Of a stretch of 17,483 bases of DNA, positions 1 through 17,112 are shown one piece after another. Both the position numbers and the translations under genes were made by a program. Where the stretch lies: assembly GCA_009103225.1 (NCBI GenBank), contig RHPI01002849.1:1-17483 (forward strand), written 5' to 3'. The notes beneath the pieces are model-generated. The model was not told the DNA's origin. It made no database searches and saw only the letters and a list, made by a program, of their open reading frames with translations. How positions within the stretch are numbered: position 1 is the stretch's first letter; the number at the start of each line of letters is the position of its first letter. Source of the stretch: Chlorokybus atmophyticus (lineage: Eukaryota; Plantae; Mesostigma and Chlorokybus algae).

Positions 1-1395
1 GCATGAGGCCGTTGGATCAAAGCCCCCAATATCTGGACCGTCCAACCCACATCCCCACAATAATAAGCAGCTCAAATATGCATAAAAATATGCAAAATGA
101 GCACAACAACATGCACAGTGTCACTCACACGCGCATGCACATATACAAGCAGAACACTTGTCACAAAGGACTTGTATTAGAAGGGGTGCAACTTGAGCAA
201 CTGCTTAAAGCACGAAATGAAATGGAAATGAGACTGCCTTTTATGCTATGCCTATCACTGATATAAAAAGGCTAAATGGCTGTTAACTGCATGAAGGAAA
301 TAAAGATAACTAGGAAACGTGGCTATAAAGTAAATGCATTCCAATGCATAAAGGAGCAAATTAGGAAGAAGGTCCATATACTTCCCCGTTAATTGGTGTG
401 CTAGGGGGTAAGACCCGGCGCCTAGCCCCTGAGGGTAAGTCTCCAACGCTTCCAGTGGGGCGCGGCTTGATATAGAGGCTTTAAGGGACCTACATAGGCA
501 GTAGGTCAGATATCTACAGTGTGGGGCCATTACCTCGGTTAGTCCACTAGTTAGGCACTCACAATAGGCACCAAACTACAACAAACTCCACGCGAGGGCT
601 GAATTTGCCTCTATTGTCGGAGGACCTTGTGCCATCTGTGTCCACCCCAACATCGCAGCCACGACTGTTATTGCTCGCTCCATGAGTGCCACCATGATGG
701 CCTGCGCACGCTGCAGAGGGTGCGTAGGCCATGGCACACATGGAGCGATGACACAGCATAGCACACCATGCACAATCATGCAGTGCACTGCAATATACAA
801 CCACAATGGAAAGACTCAGGCACACTACACTACAACAAGCACAACGCAAACAGCAAAAGCTTAGCGGTGGTGCCAGGGAGCACGCGGTGGGACTCAAGGA
901 GGGTTGCGGCAGCAAGTTGGCATTAGGCGGTTACAGCAGTAGTGTTGGCGGCTGCAGCCGTGTAGTTATGTAGGCGTGCTTGCACGCTGCTTGCGTGCGT
1001 GTGAGTATGCTTGTGCAGTGTGATAGGCATGGATGACAGTACGTGGCTTTGTAACGATGTTGATGCTGTACTAGTGATGAGAAGTAGTAGTGCGCTGAGC
1101 CCCTTAGCAACACGGAGAATGGCAAGGTAGGGGCAACCACAGCTCTTCACCTACACAGAAACTCTATGGTGATGTACAAATGATTGGAACATATTGCCAA
1201 ATAAGATGGTACTCATGAGCTTTGGTCACTTGGAAATACAGCACGTGCCCGGCAATGCCACGGCAATACAGCCAAAACCAGTGGAATGACTTCAGGCATA
1301 ATGCACGTTACGCACAAGCAGCTAGTGCAGTATTGGAAACGGGGCTGTGGAAGCATCTTGTGGCATGTATTGTGATGCAGCCAGCAGCAATCGAG

Positions 1396-10933: not shown

Positions 10934-11357
10934 GACACCAGCCAGGCCCTGGCTGGTCGCGTCCAACACCGCCGCCGCCGCCGCCGCCGCAGCGGCAGAG
11001 GCCGGGCATATGATGACTTGATCTCCACACTCAAATCAACTGCGTATAAGCATACAAACCCCATTTCAGTCGCGAACGGGTCAACATGTAGCCATGATGT
11101 AGGTACCCATCACGTACAACACGTGTCACAGATGGTTATGTACCGTACATGGCTTACATTGTTGTCCGCGGCTGTTACATGTACATGTACACAGCCGCGT
11201 CACCACACTAATACTATTTATTATTATTGCTTACAATATGCTTACACCAAAGTGTGCAACGCGTTGCCGACGGCTTGCCGTTGATGCGCTCCGATGTTTG
11301 GCTGCAGTGGTTGTCCATGTTGGGGTGCACGTAGCTGGTGGTGCTGGTGGCGGCAGC
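10934..11357. promoter_or_regulatory. Short head-to-head intergenic region (putative bidirectional promoter) between PEX1 and the LysM-channel gene
   Basis: The two inferred ATGs (10933 minus, 11358 plus) are separated by 424 nt. GC-rich flanks surround an AT-richer core (TATTTATTATTATT near 11215-11228). Transcription start sites are not determinable. Confidence 0.55.
10969..10990. repeat. (CCG)7 trinucleotide microsatellite upstream of the PEX1 ATG
   Basis: CCGCCGCCGCCGCCGCCGCCGC read directly. Confidence 0.9.
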
Positions 11358-12535
11358 ATGGCTTGCTGCCATGCGGCGCTGCTGCTGACACCTTCAGCGG
11401 GGGTATGTGCGGCAGCAAGGAGGCGGCATGGGTACATGCTGCAGCCTCCCACTTGGCCTGGATGTGGGGGGCTGCAGTTGAGCGGGGTGGGCTGGGCAAG
11501 GAGCTTTTCCTCTGCTGCAAGGTTTTCTCACCACTGCAACCGCATTGGCAGGCGCTTCCGGCCTAGTCAGCGCCAGGCCAGGTGCCAAAGCGATGCCACT
11601 GCTGGTGGCCTGGGTGACACAGGTGCGTCTTTTGGGCAAATTCTCGCTGCATTGTCATCAAGTGAGCACTGCTTTGACATGCGCATAGCACGCAAAACAT
11701 AACTGAGCATGCATGTGCTGGCCAAGCACATGCATGCTCAGTTCTGCACAACTGTCATACCAGTACTTACTGTGCAAATCGCTTTGCTCAGTAGATACTC
11801 GCAAGCTCGTCGAGGGCATGATACTAACAGAATGCACGTGTCAATGTGCGTCACCGTGGCAATTGTACACTAAGACATTGCATAAGTCAAAGAGACCATT
11901 CTGGTGACATCACTACCACAGACATTTGCACTGCCAGCGTTGACAGGCAACAACCAGTTTGTTGCCGGCTTCTTGCTCATTGGGTATGCTACCTGTCTGC
12001 TCACATTGTTGGTCGGTGAGGCATCTTCGCACTTGCACACCGCAAGTTGCACTCATAGCAAACCCCCCACCATTTTGTGCAGCACAGCCCACTCCAATGA
12101 GCAGATCTGAAACTACTTGGTGGTGCGTAGGGCCATTGGAAGAACGGACCACGATGCCAGACTTGTTGGAAACCCCAGACGGCGGAAGGCCTACTTGGGT
12201 TCGCACAATGGTTCTGCTGGGGGGTGCCGCTGCGTTTGCAGCCTTTGCGTTCTTCGGAGCACGAGCCTCACATCGGTCCGATGTGCAAGTGAGGTTTTTG
12301 TCTAGCGTGATGTGTGGAGTATTGTTGCGTGACTTGTATGACTTGTTTGCGCGGTATGCTGCAGAATTGCCCTACACCAGTTGCGACACAGCGGTATTAT
12401 GAGTACGTAGTGAAGGATGGAGATACAATGGGGTCCATTGCCGACACGTTCCATGTGCCCTTGGAAAAGTTAGCAGCCGTCAACAAGGGCGCTTATGACA
12501 TGATCTATACAGGCCAGAAGCTCACCATACCACAG
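11358..12535 (+). CDS. N-terminal module: transit-peptide-like leader, TM helix, LysM domain
   Basis: Exons 11358-11622 (ATG in a GC-rich island, donor G|GTGCGT), about 12083-12288 (acceptor ambiguous, 12131 also fits) and 12365-12535. TM helix: MVLLGGAAAFAAFAFFGA. LysM: YVVKDGDTMGSIADTFHVPLEKLAAVNKGAYDMIYTGQKLTIP, matching the Y.V..GDT...IA......L...N.....I..GQ.L.IP consensus. Unspliced read-through would end at TAA 12551-12553 (VLELW*). Confidence 0.85.
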
Positions 12536-15500
12536 GTACTTGAACTTTGGTAATGCGCATTGTCAAGCTCAAGTGCATCTTTAAACTTGCTTGACCGTGC
12601 AACCATTCAGTAAGTTAAACACGCACGGACTTGTGCTGCAAGTTGTAGTCTCACATCTAAATGCAGACAAGCTTCAACAGCATTGGCATCTCTCAAGTGC
12701 ATGGCATTGTCGGCGTCCCATGGTTGACTCTAGATTAACATATGCATTGTACAATACAGCGCGTAGCAGTTGCATTCTAAGCATTAGGTCGTTATCCTGG
12801 CTTGTTCCTCCAGGAACAAGCCAGCAATGGTTACCACCACGAATCGGGCACATTAAGCACAAACGCACTGCAAACCTTGAAAGACCTGCAGAAGGACCCA
12901 GACCTGTCATTTTTCAGCCGGGCATTCCGACTGGCATCCCAGCCTCGCAAGCACTCCGTGAGTTCCATGTAGTGCATGAGTCTGCAAAGTACAGTTCGTA
13001 TCCTTGCTTACAAAAAAATGTCTATTAGGCGTTCGAGATTGCAGAGTACCGGCTCAAGCTGGCTTTCGAGCACAGCCCTGCCTCTAAGCTCATGTTCCTG
13101 TTCGTGGTTGTCAGCATCCTTTGGGCCATTGGCACAGTGGTATACTATCGCGTGCATCCCGAACATAAATGGACATTGTCCTTGTACAAAAGCTGGAGCT
13201 ACATCTCGGGAGCCACGGGCTCCAGTCTTGATGATGAGGTTGGTGATAAGCTAGCCTGACCTGACTAACACAATATTCATACGCATTGATACACATGTAT
13301 ATGCGTATCCTGTGTTTGGTCAAGGGTTCTCCGGAGAAGCCACTTTTATGCTGCGAATGCGAGCTGATATGACTTGCAGCAGTGACACAATTTGTGCCTG
13401 GCAGGAAGGGCCCACCCAATTCGTCGCCAGCATACTGTTCTTAACAGGTGGGATCATCTTAACAGGTGTCATCTTAACAGGCGGGATCACCTTAACAGGT
13501 GGGATCATCTTAACAGGTGTCATCTTTTTTGCACTGCTGCAGGGTTTAACCACTGAGACATTGTCATCTCAGGTGAGTTGTGAGCCTCCGCTGTGGTCAC
13601 AGTTCCGCGCAATTTCCATGTGGGGTGCTTACAGCGTATGTCATGCAGATGGACATGTTGCGCAGTGGCCACAGTTCCGTCGTTGAAAGCAACCACACAG
13701 TGGTGAGCGCTAGAGTAGCACAACGATGGCCAGCCATGTAGCTCAGCTTTGGCGTTGGGCAGGCACAATATTGCGCACCACTTGCGCATTCCAAAGCTGG
13801 CTTCCCGGCAGGTGTTGGGTTGGAATGAGACCACTGTGCCCCTCATTCGTGAGCTGTGCGTAGCCAGCAAAGGCAGCGCCTCTGCCAAGAAGTCGGTAAG
13901 CTGCATTGTTTACGGCAAGCTGCCATTGATTGGTCCTTGCATACAACTTGCGATTGACATGCTGTACATATGTGTCCTGTACGCGCTGTCGGACAACATC
14001 GTTTGCACAGATCGTTGTCTTGGCCGACCGCAATATAGATGATATGAAGCGAGAGGTGGCTACCATGGTCCCTCCAGAAGACATACGTGCGGCCAGGATA
14101 GTGTATCGAGAGGGTGACCCGGCATCCCTCAATGCACAGCTGTGGGTGGCAGCCGACACCGCACGTGCAATCGTGGTCTTAGCTGAACCTGGTGACCCGG
14201 AACTTGTAGATACAAAGGTACAGGACCTGAATACAGGCAGGCTTGTCGTACTGATTGACAGCAGTAGCTCTCAATATGTGTTGTCTGCAGGCGCTGCGTG
14301 TCGTGTTGGCAACGAAGGGGACGGTTCAGCATGCATTGCATGGGCAGAAGATTTTGGGTGCGCCAAAAACTCATAAGGATCGGCAGATGCTGCTGCATGC
14401 CCCACACAAAGGAAGCCATGAGCCCGCCATCGCACCGGATGTAAGGTTACCTCTGGTTGTACAGACCAAAACCGCAAAGGGACGCCGACTTGTGCAACTT
14501 GCAGCAGGCAATCAGGCAAGTGATCCGCGTCATGTAGCATGGTTGTAGCGACTGTGCCTTGTTTATAAATCATCAGTGTAGACCTTGCACGAGCACACTA
14601 CCGTGGCTGTGATTGCATGGCAGTCAGTGCATGCTTGTTGGTCATCGGTATGCGCGCTCATCTTGATGCTGCAGCAGTCTGCTGTGTGCGTTTGAGTTCA
14701 CAACCTTGAGCTTACTGTCCGTACGGCTGCAGGTTACCATGGTTGACACCGACAGCCTGATTGGCCACAACTTGGTACTGTGTGCAACGCAACGACCAGG
14801 CCTGGCACAAGTACTGCGCAAGCTTCTTGGCTTTTCGCACGAAGAGTTTTACATCAGGTCAGCCCGACCTGATATAAAGCTCTAGAGCAATAAGCCATTG
14901 GCCATTCGTCACATGCAACGTCGGGCTCACAGGTCTTGCACATGCAGTGCATGGCCACAACTTGCAGGTCGAACATTCACAGACGCCATGGGTTCATTTC
15001 CCAATGCTTCGCCTGTAGGCATCATGGATTTCCGTTCACAACGGGTATGCTTGTTGATGTGCAGAGCAGACCCCTCACTGTTTTTCTGTCGCTTGACACT
15101 GAAAGCTGCTATGGCACATGACGTCGCTTCGGATGCAGATTGTGGTGCCAAAGGCTGACTACATTATGAAGGCAACTGATCAACTGGTGGCGGTTGCCCG
15201 CACGCAGGTACACACGCATTTCGTTAGACATGAAGTCCTTGCCAGATGAGGCATTAACGGCACTGATTATTGCAACAATATGGCAGGAAGACTACTTCCC
15301 TGCAGCACGACCATTTCGTCCAATCGTCACGTCTCTACCTGCCAGACAAGTAACTGCCCTTGCAGTGCCCAAGCAGTTTCTTATTTGCAACTGGCACAGT
15401 GCCATGGTGAGTAATGAGTGCTGACTTGACCTTGCAATGCATATGCACTGTCGTGGTGATGTCCAACATGTTGAAACAGGGCGTTTGATGGTTTCAATGG

Positions 15501-16802
15501 TCGCAGGCAGAGATGGTCACCGATCTCAATGAATGGGCAGCAATTGGCAGCGAGGTTGTTATATTTGCCAATAACGCTGACCAGAATGCACAGAGTGAAC
15601 TGCAAAGACTTGCCAGCAAAGGGACATTTCCACACATCAAGCTGGTACTTGTTGCGGCATATACTTCTTCTTCGACCATAAGCACATGGCTACTACTGAA
15701 CCAAAGTTATTGCAACTGGCCCATGCTTGCAGTCGTTTGTGACGGGCTCGACAACCAGTTTTGAGGACATTGCCAGCATCAAGCCCGCGCGTTTTGATTC
15801 CATCATCATAGCATCCCCGCGCTTGAGGGAAGGCGACATTGTTGATATTGACGGCAGGTGAAGCTACTTATCACTGAAGAGCCGCAGCAGCTACTGCCAC
15901 TGTGTGAAACAACATTTTGCTTGGTGTGTGTGTGCTTGTTGTGTGTGCAAAATTATGTTCTACAACACCAGTGGCTTACTGCAAGCCGACTGGTTAACAC
16001 TGTTGCGCCGCAGTGACTCGAGTGTCCTTGCCACAATATTGTTGATCGAAGACAATGTCAAACACTGCACGCAGCATCCGCAAATCACGGTTGAGGTCAA
16101 CGATCCACTAACGGTTAACCTTGTCAAGGTATTCTTGGTTGGTTGCGCATAGTGTCCCAACTGCCAACTGGTCACTCATACAAAGGCTATTTTGCTACAG
16201 ACAGCATCAGCGGAGACTCAGTGCGTGGTTTCAACGCAAATGGCAGCAAATTACATTGCTCAAGCATGTGTAGATAAGCAAGTCATAGTGCTGTGGCGGG
16301 ATCTACTCGATGCGGATGGAAAAGAAATCTATCTGAAGCCGATTAACAGGTGCCAATTCGTTGGTGTGAGTTGCATTGTGAGTGCCTCCCTAAATTATCG
16401 TAAACCTTGGGATTGCATTACATTTACAAGGTATGTCAACCCGGGAGAGCATATCTCATTTTGGGAGCTGCAACAAAGAGCTCTGATGCGCGGTGAAGCT
16501 GCATTGGGTTACCGCGTTACGTCCAAGGACGCTGTTGTGCTCAACCCACAGAATAAGGTAAGCACTAGTACAGAAGTATTGATGAATGGTACTTTTACAA
16601 GGCTGTACATGGCATGCCAAGCTGCCAATGTCTAACGATATGAAGTGTGGAAGCTATCTGACTGTGAAACAATTGTGAGCACACTTTCTCAATGTATATC
16701 TCCTCTCTGTCATAAAAGCCTCCAATATCTGTGCAGGAGCAATTGCTGGAGTTCGGTGCGGATGATGCAGCCGTGGTTATAGCAGAGGATGACCTCATGT
16801 AG
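11358..16802 (+). CDS. Joined model: single LysM-CASTOR/POLLUX fusion gene, ~930 aa
   Basis: A phase-0 donor CAG|GTACTT (12536) falls right after the last LysM residue and matches the phase-0 acceptor TTCCTCCAG|GAA (12813). The channel module has no start codon of its own. Only about 260 nt separate the modules, and that gap lacks the GC-rich island seen at the other three gene starts. This model overlaps the two module features above. Confidence 0.68.
12814..16802 (+). CDS. CASTOR/POLLUX/DMI1-family cation channel module (M1-pore-M2 plus two RCK domains)
   Basis: Exons: 12814-12957, 13029-13238, 13405-13572 (or 13405-13447 + 13517-13572), 13649-13702, 13812-13895, 14011-14217, 14291-14515, 14733-14857, 14948-15044, 15139-15207, 15287-15406, 15507-15644, 15733-15857, 16014-16128, 16201-16349, 16431-16557, 16737-16802 (TAG). 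Family motifs appear in order: YRLKLAFEHSPASKL, LRSGHSSVVESNHTVVLGW, IVYREGDP, ARAIVVLA, ALRVVL, RPGLAQVLRKLLGF..EFY, WPQLAGRTF...FPNA, FDSIII, DSSVLATILLI, LDADGKEIYLKP, ALGYR, VLNPQNK, VVIAED. No in-frame ATG lies between the upstream stop (12778-12780) and the first TM helix, so an upstream exon is needed. Confidence 0.92.
13440..13524 (+). repeat. Tandem array of five 15/18-nt units, C-TTAACAGG(T/C)(GGG)ATCA(T/C) / C-TTAACAGGTGTCAT, inside the M2 helix exon; candidate 69-nt intron 13448-13516
   Basis: Read directly: TTAACAGGTGGGATCATC / TTAACAGGTGTCATC / TTAACAGGCGGGATCACC / TTAACAGGTGGGATCATC / TTAACAGGTGTCATC, with units starting at 13441, 13459, 13474, 13492 and 13510. Confidence 0.95.
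14516..14732 (+). other. Non-canonical GC-AG intron in the channel gene
   Basis: Donor CAG|GCAAGT and acceptor GGCTGCAG|GTT. This join preserves LPLVVQTKTAKGRRLVQLAAGNQ|VTMVD, which is colinear with the family's HVVVE...LV.LVGG..IETV segment. I found no GT donor that gives this phase while keeping that segment. Confidence 0.75.
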
Positions 16803-17112
16803 TCGCTGGAGTGGTGCGTATAGTATGGTACATATATTGAGGTTACATGTAGGTTCAGCGGTGAACTAGACCTGATTGTTAGCAGGTGTGGCGCGGATGA
16901 TTACAAGGATCGATATCAGGCTTATCTAAGCGCTGCATGCACTGTAAATGAGGCCTTTCGGCATTGTGGTGCGGTGGAGCCTTGCGTGGAAGAGACCTAT
17001 TTCCAGCAGCTTGTATCACCTCTCGCTTAATCACCGCGGTTGAGGGTGCGCTCTCGCGGTTGCCGCTGACCTTGTTTGTTTATGTAACTGTAACTAGCAC
17101 TATCTGCACGTA

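Follow-up and report, generated by a model that had tools for sequence, protein, structure and literature searches.

A LysM domain and a CASTOR/POLLUX-type channel joined in one spliced gene of Chlorokybus atmophyticus

The channels CASTOR/POLLUX/DMI1 and PEC drive plant nuclear and plastid calcium signals, and their control is poorly known. A window of 17 483 nucleotides from the streptophyte alga Chlorokybus atmophyticus encodes, on its forward strand, a LysM domain followed by the parts of such a channel. Do the two belong to one gene, and, if so, on which side of the membrane would the LysM domain lie and what might it do there? A preliminary description of the locus, made from the nucleotide sequence, had proposed that LysM and channel share one polypeptide. 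This is borne out by splice joints in three RNA runs, by the open reading frame and by a collinear orthologue in Mesostigma viride. The joining of LysM and a CASTOR/POLLUX-type channel in one spliced gene is confirmed as a real and conserved domain combination.

One spliced gene from leader to gating ring

The features of the locus are reported in table 1. They make up a single gene of 21 exons (11358–16802, + strand), with a reading frame that is open from ATG 11358 to TGA 16800–16802. The gene is transcribed and spliced; long RNA contigs begin in the 5′ leader exon, cross 20 introns and reach the 3′ UTR. The RNA was seen as assembled contigs, not as single long molecules spanning LysM to the RCK ring, and comes from three public runs of two studies (X1, X2 and X3), X3 being derived from a relative that is approximately 3–5% diverged. 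In the RNA-supported reading, the productive mRNA form encodes 915 amino acids, which comprise a basic disordered leader of about 110 aa, the hydrophobic segment TM0, a single LysM domain, a hydrophilic linker of about 60 aa, a P-loop pore with two transmembrane helices (2-TM) and a tandem RCK ring. The preliminary description was right in predicting a single fused protein and wrong as to its length, put at approximately 930 aa.

Table 1. Features of the LysM-channel gene of C. atmophyticus (positions are those of the window).
Feature	Position	Strand	Evidence
Exon 1: ATG 11358 and leader of ~88 aa, basic, acid-poor, fast-evolving, transit-peptide-like	11358–11622	+	contigs X1, X3
Exon 2: end of leader, internal Met (ATG 12154), TM0 (aa ~112–134), then Ala-Arg-Ala	12131–12288	+	joints 11622^12131 and 12288^12365 in X1, X2, X3; hydropathy
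Exon 3: single LysM domain (aa 155–197)	12365–12535	+	Pfam PF01476, E 2.4e-12
Phase-0 GT..AG intron linking LysM to channel part	12536–12813	+	joint in X1, X2, X3
Exon 4: hydrophilic linker of 48 aa, no hydrophobic segment	12814–12957	+	RNA joints; hydropathy
Exon 5: amphipathic pre-helix, TM1, pore helix, filter region Ser-Gly-Ala-Thr-Gly-Ser-Ser	13029–13238	+	RNA contigs; 43% identical to Mesostigma
Exons 6–7: inner helix TM2	13405–13447, 13517–13572	+	joint 13447^13517 in X1, X3
Exons 8–9: start of RCK1	13649–13702, 13812–13895	+	in-frame joint 13702^13812 in X3
Exons 10–21: tandem RCK gating ring with Castor_Poll_mid, TGA 16800–16802	14011–16802	+	all joints in X1, X2, X3
3′ UTR	16803–17000, at least to 17000	+	X1 contig continues through

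The decisive joint is 12535^12814, which skips 278 nt and is present, with 19 further canonical joints, in the RNA contigs of the three runs; in the protein it falls between Gln198 and Glu199. The contigs that carry it measure 3119 nt in X1 (depth 124), 408 nt in X2 and 3190 nt in X3. The preliminary description had named this junction as the one to look for in transcripts, and its reading of the surrounding sites holds: the LysM exon ends with the phase-0 donor CAG^GTACTT, the next exon opens at a phase-0 acceptor (AG at 12812–12813), and the channel frame is closed further upstream by TAA 12778–12780.

A contig that runs across two genes does not alone prove one transcript, and an unspliced reading would stop at TAA 12553, five codons further on. 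The locus could on these grounds be read as two adjacent genes, one for a small TM-LysM protein and one for a channel, with separate products, the link between their transcripts arising solely from read-through splicing or from assembly. We consider this very unlikely. The in-frame GT..AG joint is found in three runs, including that of the diverged relative; the channel part has, as first described, no Met of its own before TM1 in the open frame; and Mesostigma keeps the identical fused order. Nothing is assembled within the intron either: X1, X2 and X3 have no contig inside 12536–12810, which is a weak negative because contigs show presence, not absence. The same reservation applies to polyadenylation after TAA 12553, of which the contigs bear no sign, and to an independent channel mRNA from ATG 12661. 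A separate channel start at this ATG was rejected, being unsupported by any contig.

Past the LysM exon, exons 4–10 differ in the X3 relative by 14 listed changes, 12 of them synonymous; in the LysM domain, three differences are synonymous and three conservative. An extra coding exon at about 11921–12016, included in the earlier gene model, had to be abandoned: the frame is open there, yet the stretch is missing from all contigs and is intronic, 11622 joining directly to 12131.

The public gene model of the locus (P0001, 944 aa) already carries both LysM (PF01476) and Castor_Poll_mid (PF06241). The RNA corrects it twice: the inner pore helix becomes 23 aa shorter, and a further 6 aa are lost at the one GC..AG intron of the ring part (14516–14732). 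The 23 aa stem from the intron 13448–13516, kept in the public model, and are missing in Mesostigma; this intron, of 69 nt, interrupts TM2 within an 18/33-nt tandem repeat (TRF array 13439–13519).

At the start of RCK1, use of an alternative acceptor, 13763, lengthens the exon by 49 nt and introduces a stop at 13828. The main X1 contig (depth 124), the sole X1 contig there, uses 13702^13763, with a frame shift and a product of 388 aa; the productive joint 13702^13812 is known only from X3 and the public model. From this it might be argued that the locus in this strain mainly yields a truncated protein of 388 aa, which would have LysM and pore but lack the RCK ring, or else an NMD target, the full-length fusion being minor. 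Such an outcome seems to us highly improbable: assemblers keep one path of a bubble and drop rare or equal variants, X3 takes the in-frame acceptor 13812, the differences listed downstream are all synonymous, and the exons past the alternative acceptor still form one open reading frame to the stop codon.

Conserved order and structure of the parts

The M. viride orthologue (P0005, a gene model of 970 aa) has collinear parts and contains both PF01476 and PF06241. The TM0-LysM block is collinear between the two algae (36% identity, E 3e-10), and the two proteins form a clade with 100/100 support. Since the order of the parts is the same in M. viride, the fusion is old and predates the split of the two lineages. 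The architecture search suggested in the preliminary description thus yielded a second species, and these two remained the only ones. Residues 96–330 used as query match only the protein itself and an unrelated LysM protein, with no further LysM-channel; among approximately 120 listed ring relatives, PF01476 is found only in Chlorokybus and Mesostigma; and in 30 metagenome loci, mostly bacterial-type, no LysM adjoins the channel. Nothing in the searched literature joins LysM with CASTOR/POLLUX/PEC or RCK channels. The statement that the architecture was undescribed holds for papers, none discussing the fusion having been found in that literature, and does not hold for databases, where the fused model is public with both Pfam domains.

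The LysM domain adopts, in the AF2 model, the fold beta-alpha-alpha-beta (strands 152–156 and 193–197, helices 163–169 and 174–180; pLDDT 85–94). The nearest solved LysM domains are those of Bacillus subtilis LytE, a peptidoglycan hydrolase, and of fungal Ecp6. The linker between LysM and pore, about 60 aa here, is about 90 aa longer in Mesostigma (about 150 aa); it is poorly conserved and of low pLDDT, and its exon 4 portion has no Pfam match.

The two-helix P-loop pore stands directly before the ring (TM1 262–288, TM2 318–344, with the pore helix between) and aligns with homologues. Its exon 5 part gives a weak match to the MthK pore (E 0.25) and has pLDDT 85–90. Three hydrophobic helices are predicted in the Chlorokybus and Mesostigma proteins, against four in a POLLUX-type plant protein (P0030) and in a Coccomyxa homologue (P0011). 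The ring is modelled with pLDDT >90. Castor_Poll_mid is recognized in P0001 with E 1.1e-25 (90 bits, against a cut-off of 26.7) and also exon by exon, and phmmer comparison with the PDB retrieves the CASTOR gating-ring crystal (6o6j, E 9.4e-59) and DMI1 (7vm8, E 6.5e-52).

The 5′ end of the coding region is covered by contigs that begin at 11285 in X3 and 11387 in X1. ATG 11358 has the best start context, with A at −3 and G at +4, and the 95 codons from it up to the internal Met are open into exon 2, as occurs in 5% of shuffles. A start further upstream, at ATG 11238, was discarded: it precedes the beginning of the X3 contig, and its frame would be broken by the loss of 1 nt that X3 shows at 11297. 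The leader is Ala/Ser-rich, with 11 basic residues and a single acidic one among residues 1–80, and disordered in the model (pLDDT ~28–30). The TM0 that follows is collinear with that of Mesostigma, where it is succeeded by Ala-His-Ala. The internal Met lies 17 aa before TM0 in Chlorokybus and 10 aa before it in Mesostigma; if translation began at this Met (ATG 12154), TM0 would become an ordinary ER signal peptide.

Place in the CASTOR/POLLUX/PEC superfamily

The Chlorokybus protein is a divergent member of the CASTOR/POLLUX/PEC superfamily. Like the plant nuclear-envelope cation channels CASTOR/POLLUX/DMI1/SYM8, it places a tandem RCK ring with Castor_Poll_mid after a P-loop pore. It differs from them by the LysM domain, by three rather than four predicted transmembrane helices and by an identity of only 21–29%. 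The filter motif is also distinct: Ser-Gly-Ala-Thr-Gly-Ser here, Ala-Asp-Ser-Gly-Asn-His in the POLLUX-type P0030, and the filter Ala-Asp-(Ala/Ser)-Gly-Asn-His of DMI1/POLLUX/CASTOR proper is absent from the Chlorokybus protein. Further likenesses are with MthK and BK/Slo, K+ channels in which a cytoplasmic RCK ring likewise gates a 2-TM P-loop pore; Slo channels appear among the Foldseek structural matches. Compared with these, the algal protein is without the K+ filter Thr-Val-Gly-Tyr-Gly, has a ring of Castor_Poll_mid type and bears the extra N-terminal LysM.

In Foldseek comparison with Swiss-Prot, POLLUX/CASTOR/DMI1 are the best matches (E ~1e-55, 21–23% identity), and Arabidopsis PEC1/2 (At5g02940, At5g43745) score lower (E ~1e-42, 16–17% identity). 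A PEC relationship is therefore unsupported by similarity, and orthology to PEC on this basis was set aside; neither AFDB clusters nor the protein atlas decided the clade, the atlas cluster POLLUX-like 1 scoring 0.85 against 0.86 for the top cluster. In a tree that left out PEC and the non-vascular 'third clade' of PMC8644588, the Chlorokybus and Mesostigma proteins pair as sisters, and their long branch falls outside POLLUX-type proteins and Coccomyxa. These comparisons establish orthology neither to DMI1 nor to plastid PEC1/2. The layout would fit PEC1, a member of the common superfamily, in the odd number of transmembrane helices (three predicted here) and perhaps in the transit-peptide-like leader. 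The RCK domain of PEC1 is trypsin-accessible in the intermembrane space, and an odd number of transmembrane helices was deduced for it (Voelkner et al. 2021, PMC8644588). The same paper reports PEC homologues in Chlorokybus and Mesostigma (PMC8644588). It reports no LysM in PEC1/2, the term having 0 occurrences in it (PMC8644588); the Chlorokybus protein carries one.

Probable membrane topology and possible role of the LysM domain

In a 2-TM P-loop pore, TM1 starts and TM2 ends on one face of the membrane, and the stretch from LysM to TM1 contains no hydrophobic segment. For these reasons, the LysM domain and the RCK ring probably share one face, with four LysM copies per tetramer. The placement should be the same if TM0 is retained as an anchor and if it is removed at Ala-X-Ala (Ala-Arg-Ala, aa 132–134) within a two-part targeting leader. 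Given the normal 2-TM topology of the pore fold, a position on the opposite, outer-mouth face is not predicted. A conserved channel with LysM predicted on the face of its gating ring offers a testable handle in the earliest-branching streptophyte algae. It raises the questions of whether a GlcNAc polymer or peptidoglycan positions or regulates such a channel, and in which membrane, and it bears on how peptidoglycan-keeping plastids connect that layer to envelope transport.

As first suggested, the protein may be a glycan-sensing or glycan-anchored channel. A fused gene with same-face topology and a plastid-envelope peptidoglycan tether is, overall, the best explanation, and on balance we lean towards it. 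Its last element, an organelle-envelope channel tethered to plastid peptidoglycan, is by itself a best guess that we offer tentatively and as speculation. The leader would send the protein to the plastid envelope, and the RCK ring and LysM would both lie in the intermembrane space, where Arabidopsis PEC1 has been reported to have its RCK domain. There, LysM could attach to peptidoglycan, a layer of which is believed to persist in the plastids of streptophyte algae; binding would anchor or position the channel, or might make its gating depend on the condition of the wall. The core enzymes of peptidoglycan synthesis are encoded by all streptophyte algae (PMC7455551). The points counted for the plastid idea were the basic disordered leader, the intermembrane-space RCK domain of PEC1, the peptidoglycan enzymes and LytE as nearest LysM. 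CASTOR/POLLUX themselves were once wrongly assigned to plastids.

The greater similarity to POLLUX/CASTOR/DMI1 than to PEC1/2 could point elsewhere, to a real fusion that acts in the nuclear envelope or ER like these channels, its LysM having a role unrelated to peptidoglycan and recognizing another GlcNAc glycan or a protein. An internal Met shortly before TM0 and Ala-X-Ala after it are moreover the layout of an ER signal peptide. We hold this to be rather unlikely in view of the start context of ATG 11358 and the upstream codons open in frame with it, of a filter motif and a number of transmembrane helices unlike those of POLLUX-type proteins, and of the position of the clade in the tree, outside POLLUX-type and Coccomyxa. 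In a nuclear-envelope or ER location, LysM would be in the nucleoplasm or cytosol, or in the perinuclear lumen if TM0 is a signal peptide.

The LysM of the plastid-tether explanation is a holdfast; it could instead be a ligand sensor, a muropeptide or chito-oligosaccharide bound beside the RCK ring opening or closing the pore of a glycan-gated cation channel. The predicted location of LysM and ring on one face and the retention of the architecture in two lineages would agree with this, as would the established action of legume LysM receptors upstream of DMI1. A lone LysM whose linker is long, variable in length, poorly conserved and of low pLDDT nevertheless resembles a tether more than an allosteric module, and gating by a glycan is in our estimate decidedly unlikely. 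If true, it would provide the first glycan-gated channel of the CASTOR/POLLUX family, and, as a 'Rosetta stone' fusion, evidence that channels of CASTOR/POLLUX type already had a functional tie to LysM perception before land plants arose.

A link to NFR1/NFR5-DMI1 symbiosis signalling is an analogy only. The LysM receptor kinases (NFR1/NFR5, CERK1) and small LysM membrane proteins have, as here, a canonical LysM fold near a membrane helix. The Chlorokybus protein, with no protein kinase domain among its Pfam matches, differs from the receptor kinases in having one LysM, not three, and an ion channel as the output module on the same chain.

The LysM domain and the channel in one transcript

The window is eukaryotic in character, with numerous short GT..AG introns. 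The details given in the preliminary description hold. A complete LysM domain is encoded by exon 12365–12535 (PF01476 in Pfam, E 2.4e-12), which ends in CAG/GTACTT; the open exon that comes next begins at 12814, preceded by AG, and an in-frame TAA (12778–12780) lies before this channel exon. Four public RNA runs under the same organism label were examined, all as assembled contigs, and three of the four (X1, X2 and X3) aligned to the stretch. The proposed joint 12535^12814, a GT..AG junction that removes 278 nt, is present in all three. The contigs bearing it measure 3119 nt at a depth of 124 (X1), 408 nt (X2) and 3190 nt (X3); the last is about 3–5% different from the window, so its source would be another strain or a sister species. 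The contigs combined define 20 introns (19 GT..AG and one GC..AG), and the reading frame closes at TGA 16800–16802.

No contig lies within intron 12536–12813, there is no hint of a LysM mRNA ending after TAA 12553, and the contigs of the three runs give no sign of a channel mRNA with a first exon of its own; such contigs are evidence of presence and cannot prove absence. The channel frame, described earlier as lacking a start, indeed has no Met ahead of TM1, the first pore helix, and the channel part is therefore unable to start alone. The LysM domain and the channel are carried by one polypeptide; two genes joined by read-through would be a very improbable account of these transcripts.

With the in-frame acceptor 13812, the encoded protein has 915 amino acids. 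Its C-terminal tandem RCK gating ring matches the crystal chains of CASTOR (E 9.4e-59) and DMI1 (E 6.5e-52), both plant nuclear-envelope channels. The AlphaFold2 model has an overall pLDDT of 76.5 and a pTM of 0.73, the pore and ring reaching pLDDT 85–97.

Features of the LysM-channel gene and its 915-aa product
Feature	Position	Strand	Remarks
Exon 1	ATG 11358 to 11622	+	RNA contigs; spliced straight to 12131
Leader	aa 1 to ~110		disordered in AlphaFold2 model
TM0 (hydrophobic helix)	aa ~112–134		followed by Ala-Arg-Ala
LysM	aa 155–197		PF01476; beta-alpha-alpha-beta in AlphaFold2, pLDDT 85–94
Hydrophilic linker	aa 199 to ~246
Amphipathic helix	between linker and TM1
TM1	aa 262–288
Pore helix and filter region	between TM1 and TM2
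TM2	aa 318–344
Tandem RCK ring	C-terminal to TM2		Castor_Poll_mid, E 1.1e-25

A candidate coding exon near 11921–12016 is an open stretch, but the contigs, which join 11622 to 12131, make it intronic. Intron 1 also contains a 22-nt inverted repeat (11698–11746), 95% complementary with a 5-nt loop.

Splice forms and the public gene model

At the exon 9 fork the X1 contig uses acceptor 13763 (joint 13702^13763); 13812 is taken in X3 and in the public model. The X1 acceptor lies 49 nt upstream, and the added 49 nt shift the frame to a stop at 13828, giving a 388-aa product with LysM and pore and without the ring. This form may come from unproductive splicing under regulation or from the path the assembler chose; assemblers retain one path per fork, and contigs are therefore no measure of the 13763/13812 ratio. 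Downstream of the fork, five differences from the window are listed, and the three that were scored (two in X3, one in X1) are all synonymous, which argues for selection on the full reading frame. That the locus yields mostly a truncated product is highly unlikely.

The public model departs from the RNA model at two places. It retains a 69-nt in-frame intron (13448–13516) lying wholly within an 18/33-nt tandem repeat (13439–13519) in the inner pore helix, which adds 23 residues inside TM2 that are absent from Mesostigma. The X1 main contig lacks this intron, an 81-nt X1 contig retaining it at depth 4 versus 124; in X3 the stretch is either spliced out or the duplication is absent from the genome. 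Three runs confirm the GC..AG intron (14516–14732); there the public model splices from a GT that lies 18 nt 3' of the true GC donor, adding 6 amino acids.

Distribution and place in the superfamily

A single RCK exon, used in an exhaustive profile search, returned the window's own protein (Chlorokybus atmophyticus, JGI Chlat1/EukProt, 944 aa), annotated with PF01476 and PF06241. The fused gene model was thus already public, which qualifies the earlier statement that the architecture was not known as described; no paper linking LysM with CASTOR/POLLUX/PEC or RCK channels was found in the literature searched, and the papers on PEC, the Arabidopsis plastid envelope channels, do not mention LysM.

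The order of parts recurs in a 970-aa protein of Mesostigma viride, Mv21686: a leader, TM0 with Ala-His-Ala behind it, LysM, a linker longer than that of Chlorokybus, pore and ring. The TM0-LysM block is collinear between the two species (36% identity, E 3e-10), the pore is 43% identical, and both proteins group in one clade at 100/100. The fusion is therefore old and did not arise as a local accident. LysM is carried by only these two among about 120 listed ring relatives, and no further LysM-channel fusion was found by a search with the N-terminal part or in 30 metagenome loci. The top listed ring relatives after the query are oomycete proteins of 1400–1600 aa (Achlya, Thraustotheca; E ~1e-97), and the exon search also picked up a protein of 1405 aa, matching in 7 stretches, and one of 2694 aa, matching in 14; all of these (P0028, P0029, P0002, P0003) resemble concatemers with several RCK or channel copies.

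Three streptophyte clades have been described: plastid PEC, with members in Chlorokybus and Mesostigma; nuclear CASTOR/POLLUX; and a third in non-vascular streptophytes, the latter two spanning streptophyte algae (Voelkner et al. 2021, PMC8644588). By Foldseek the LysM-channel is closer to POLLUX-type proteins (E ~1e-55, 21–23% identity) than to PEC1/2 (E ~1e-42, 16–17%), and these scores favour the former. However, its filter motif differs, it has three rather than four TMs, and in a tree built with POLLUX-type and Coccomyxa sequences the Chlorokybus and Mesostigma pair has a long branch and falls outside these two; all three count against POLLUX-type membership. We therefore file it at the level of the CASTOR/POLLUX/PEC superfamily only. 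A channel of the nuclear envelope or ER whose LysM would lie in the nucleoplasm or lumen is a rather unlikely alternative.

Topology and a candidate mechanism

In a two-TM P-loop pore, TM1 begins and TM2 ends on one and the same membrane face. The linker between LysM and TM1 lacks a hydrophobic segment in both species, and LysM is therefore probably on the same side as the RCK ring, with TM0 kept as an anchor or cut at Ala-X-Ala. This placement speaks against a sensor across the membrane from the ring. A glycan-gated channel proper is an improbable rival.

The leader is basic and acid-poor, starts at the best-context ATG (11358) and evolves fast in X3 (five of eight listed changes are non-synonymous). 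Because of these traits it is speculatively predicted to be an organellar, possibly two-part, targeting signal. It would direct the LysM-channel to an organelle, and LysM would tether an envelope channel to peptidoglycan. In PEC1 the RCK domain faces the plastid intermembrane space and the count of TMs is inferred to be odd (PMC8644588), streptophyte algae encode the core synthesis enzymes of the peptidoglycan pathway (PMC7455551), and among solved LysM structures the nearest comes from a peptidoglycan hydrolase; for these reasons the single most coherent model is an envelope channel tethered to peptidoglycan, though it is speculative.

Between X3 and the window, changes are mostly non-synonymous in the leader and TM0 region and mostly synonymous in the channel; in the leader, 71 nt are replaced by 77 unalignable letters, the 6-nt length difference keeping the frame. 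The 5' leader of the transcript has two upstream ATGs in weak context (11294–11566 and 11317), one opening an ORF of 90 codons overlapping the main start; within this ORF X3 lacks 1 nt at 11297.
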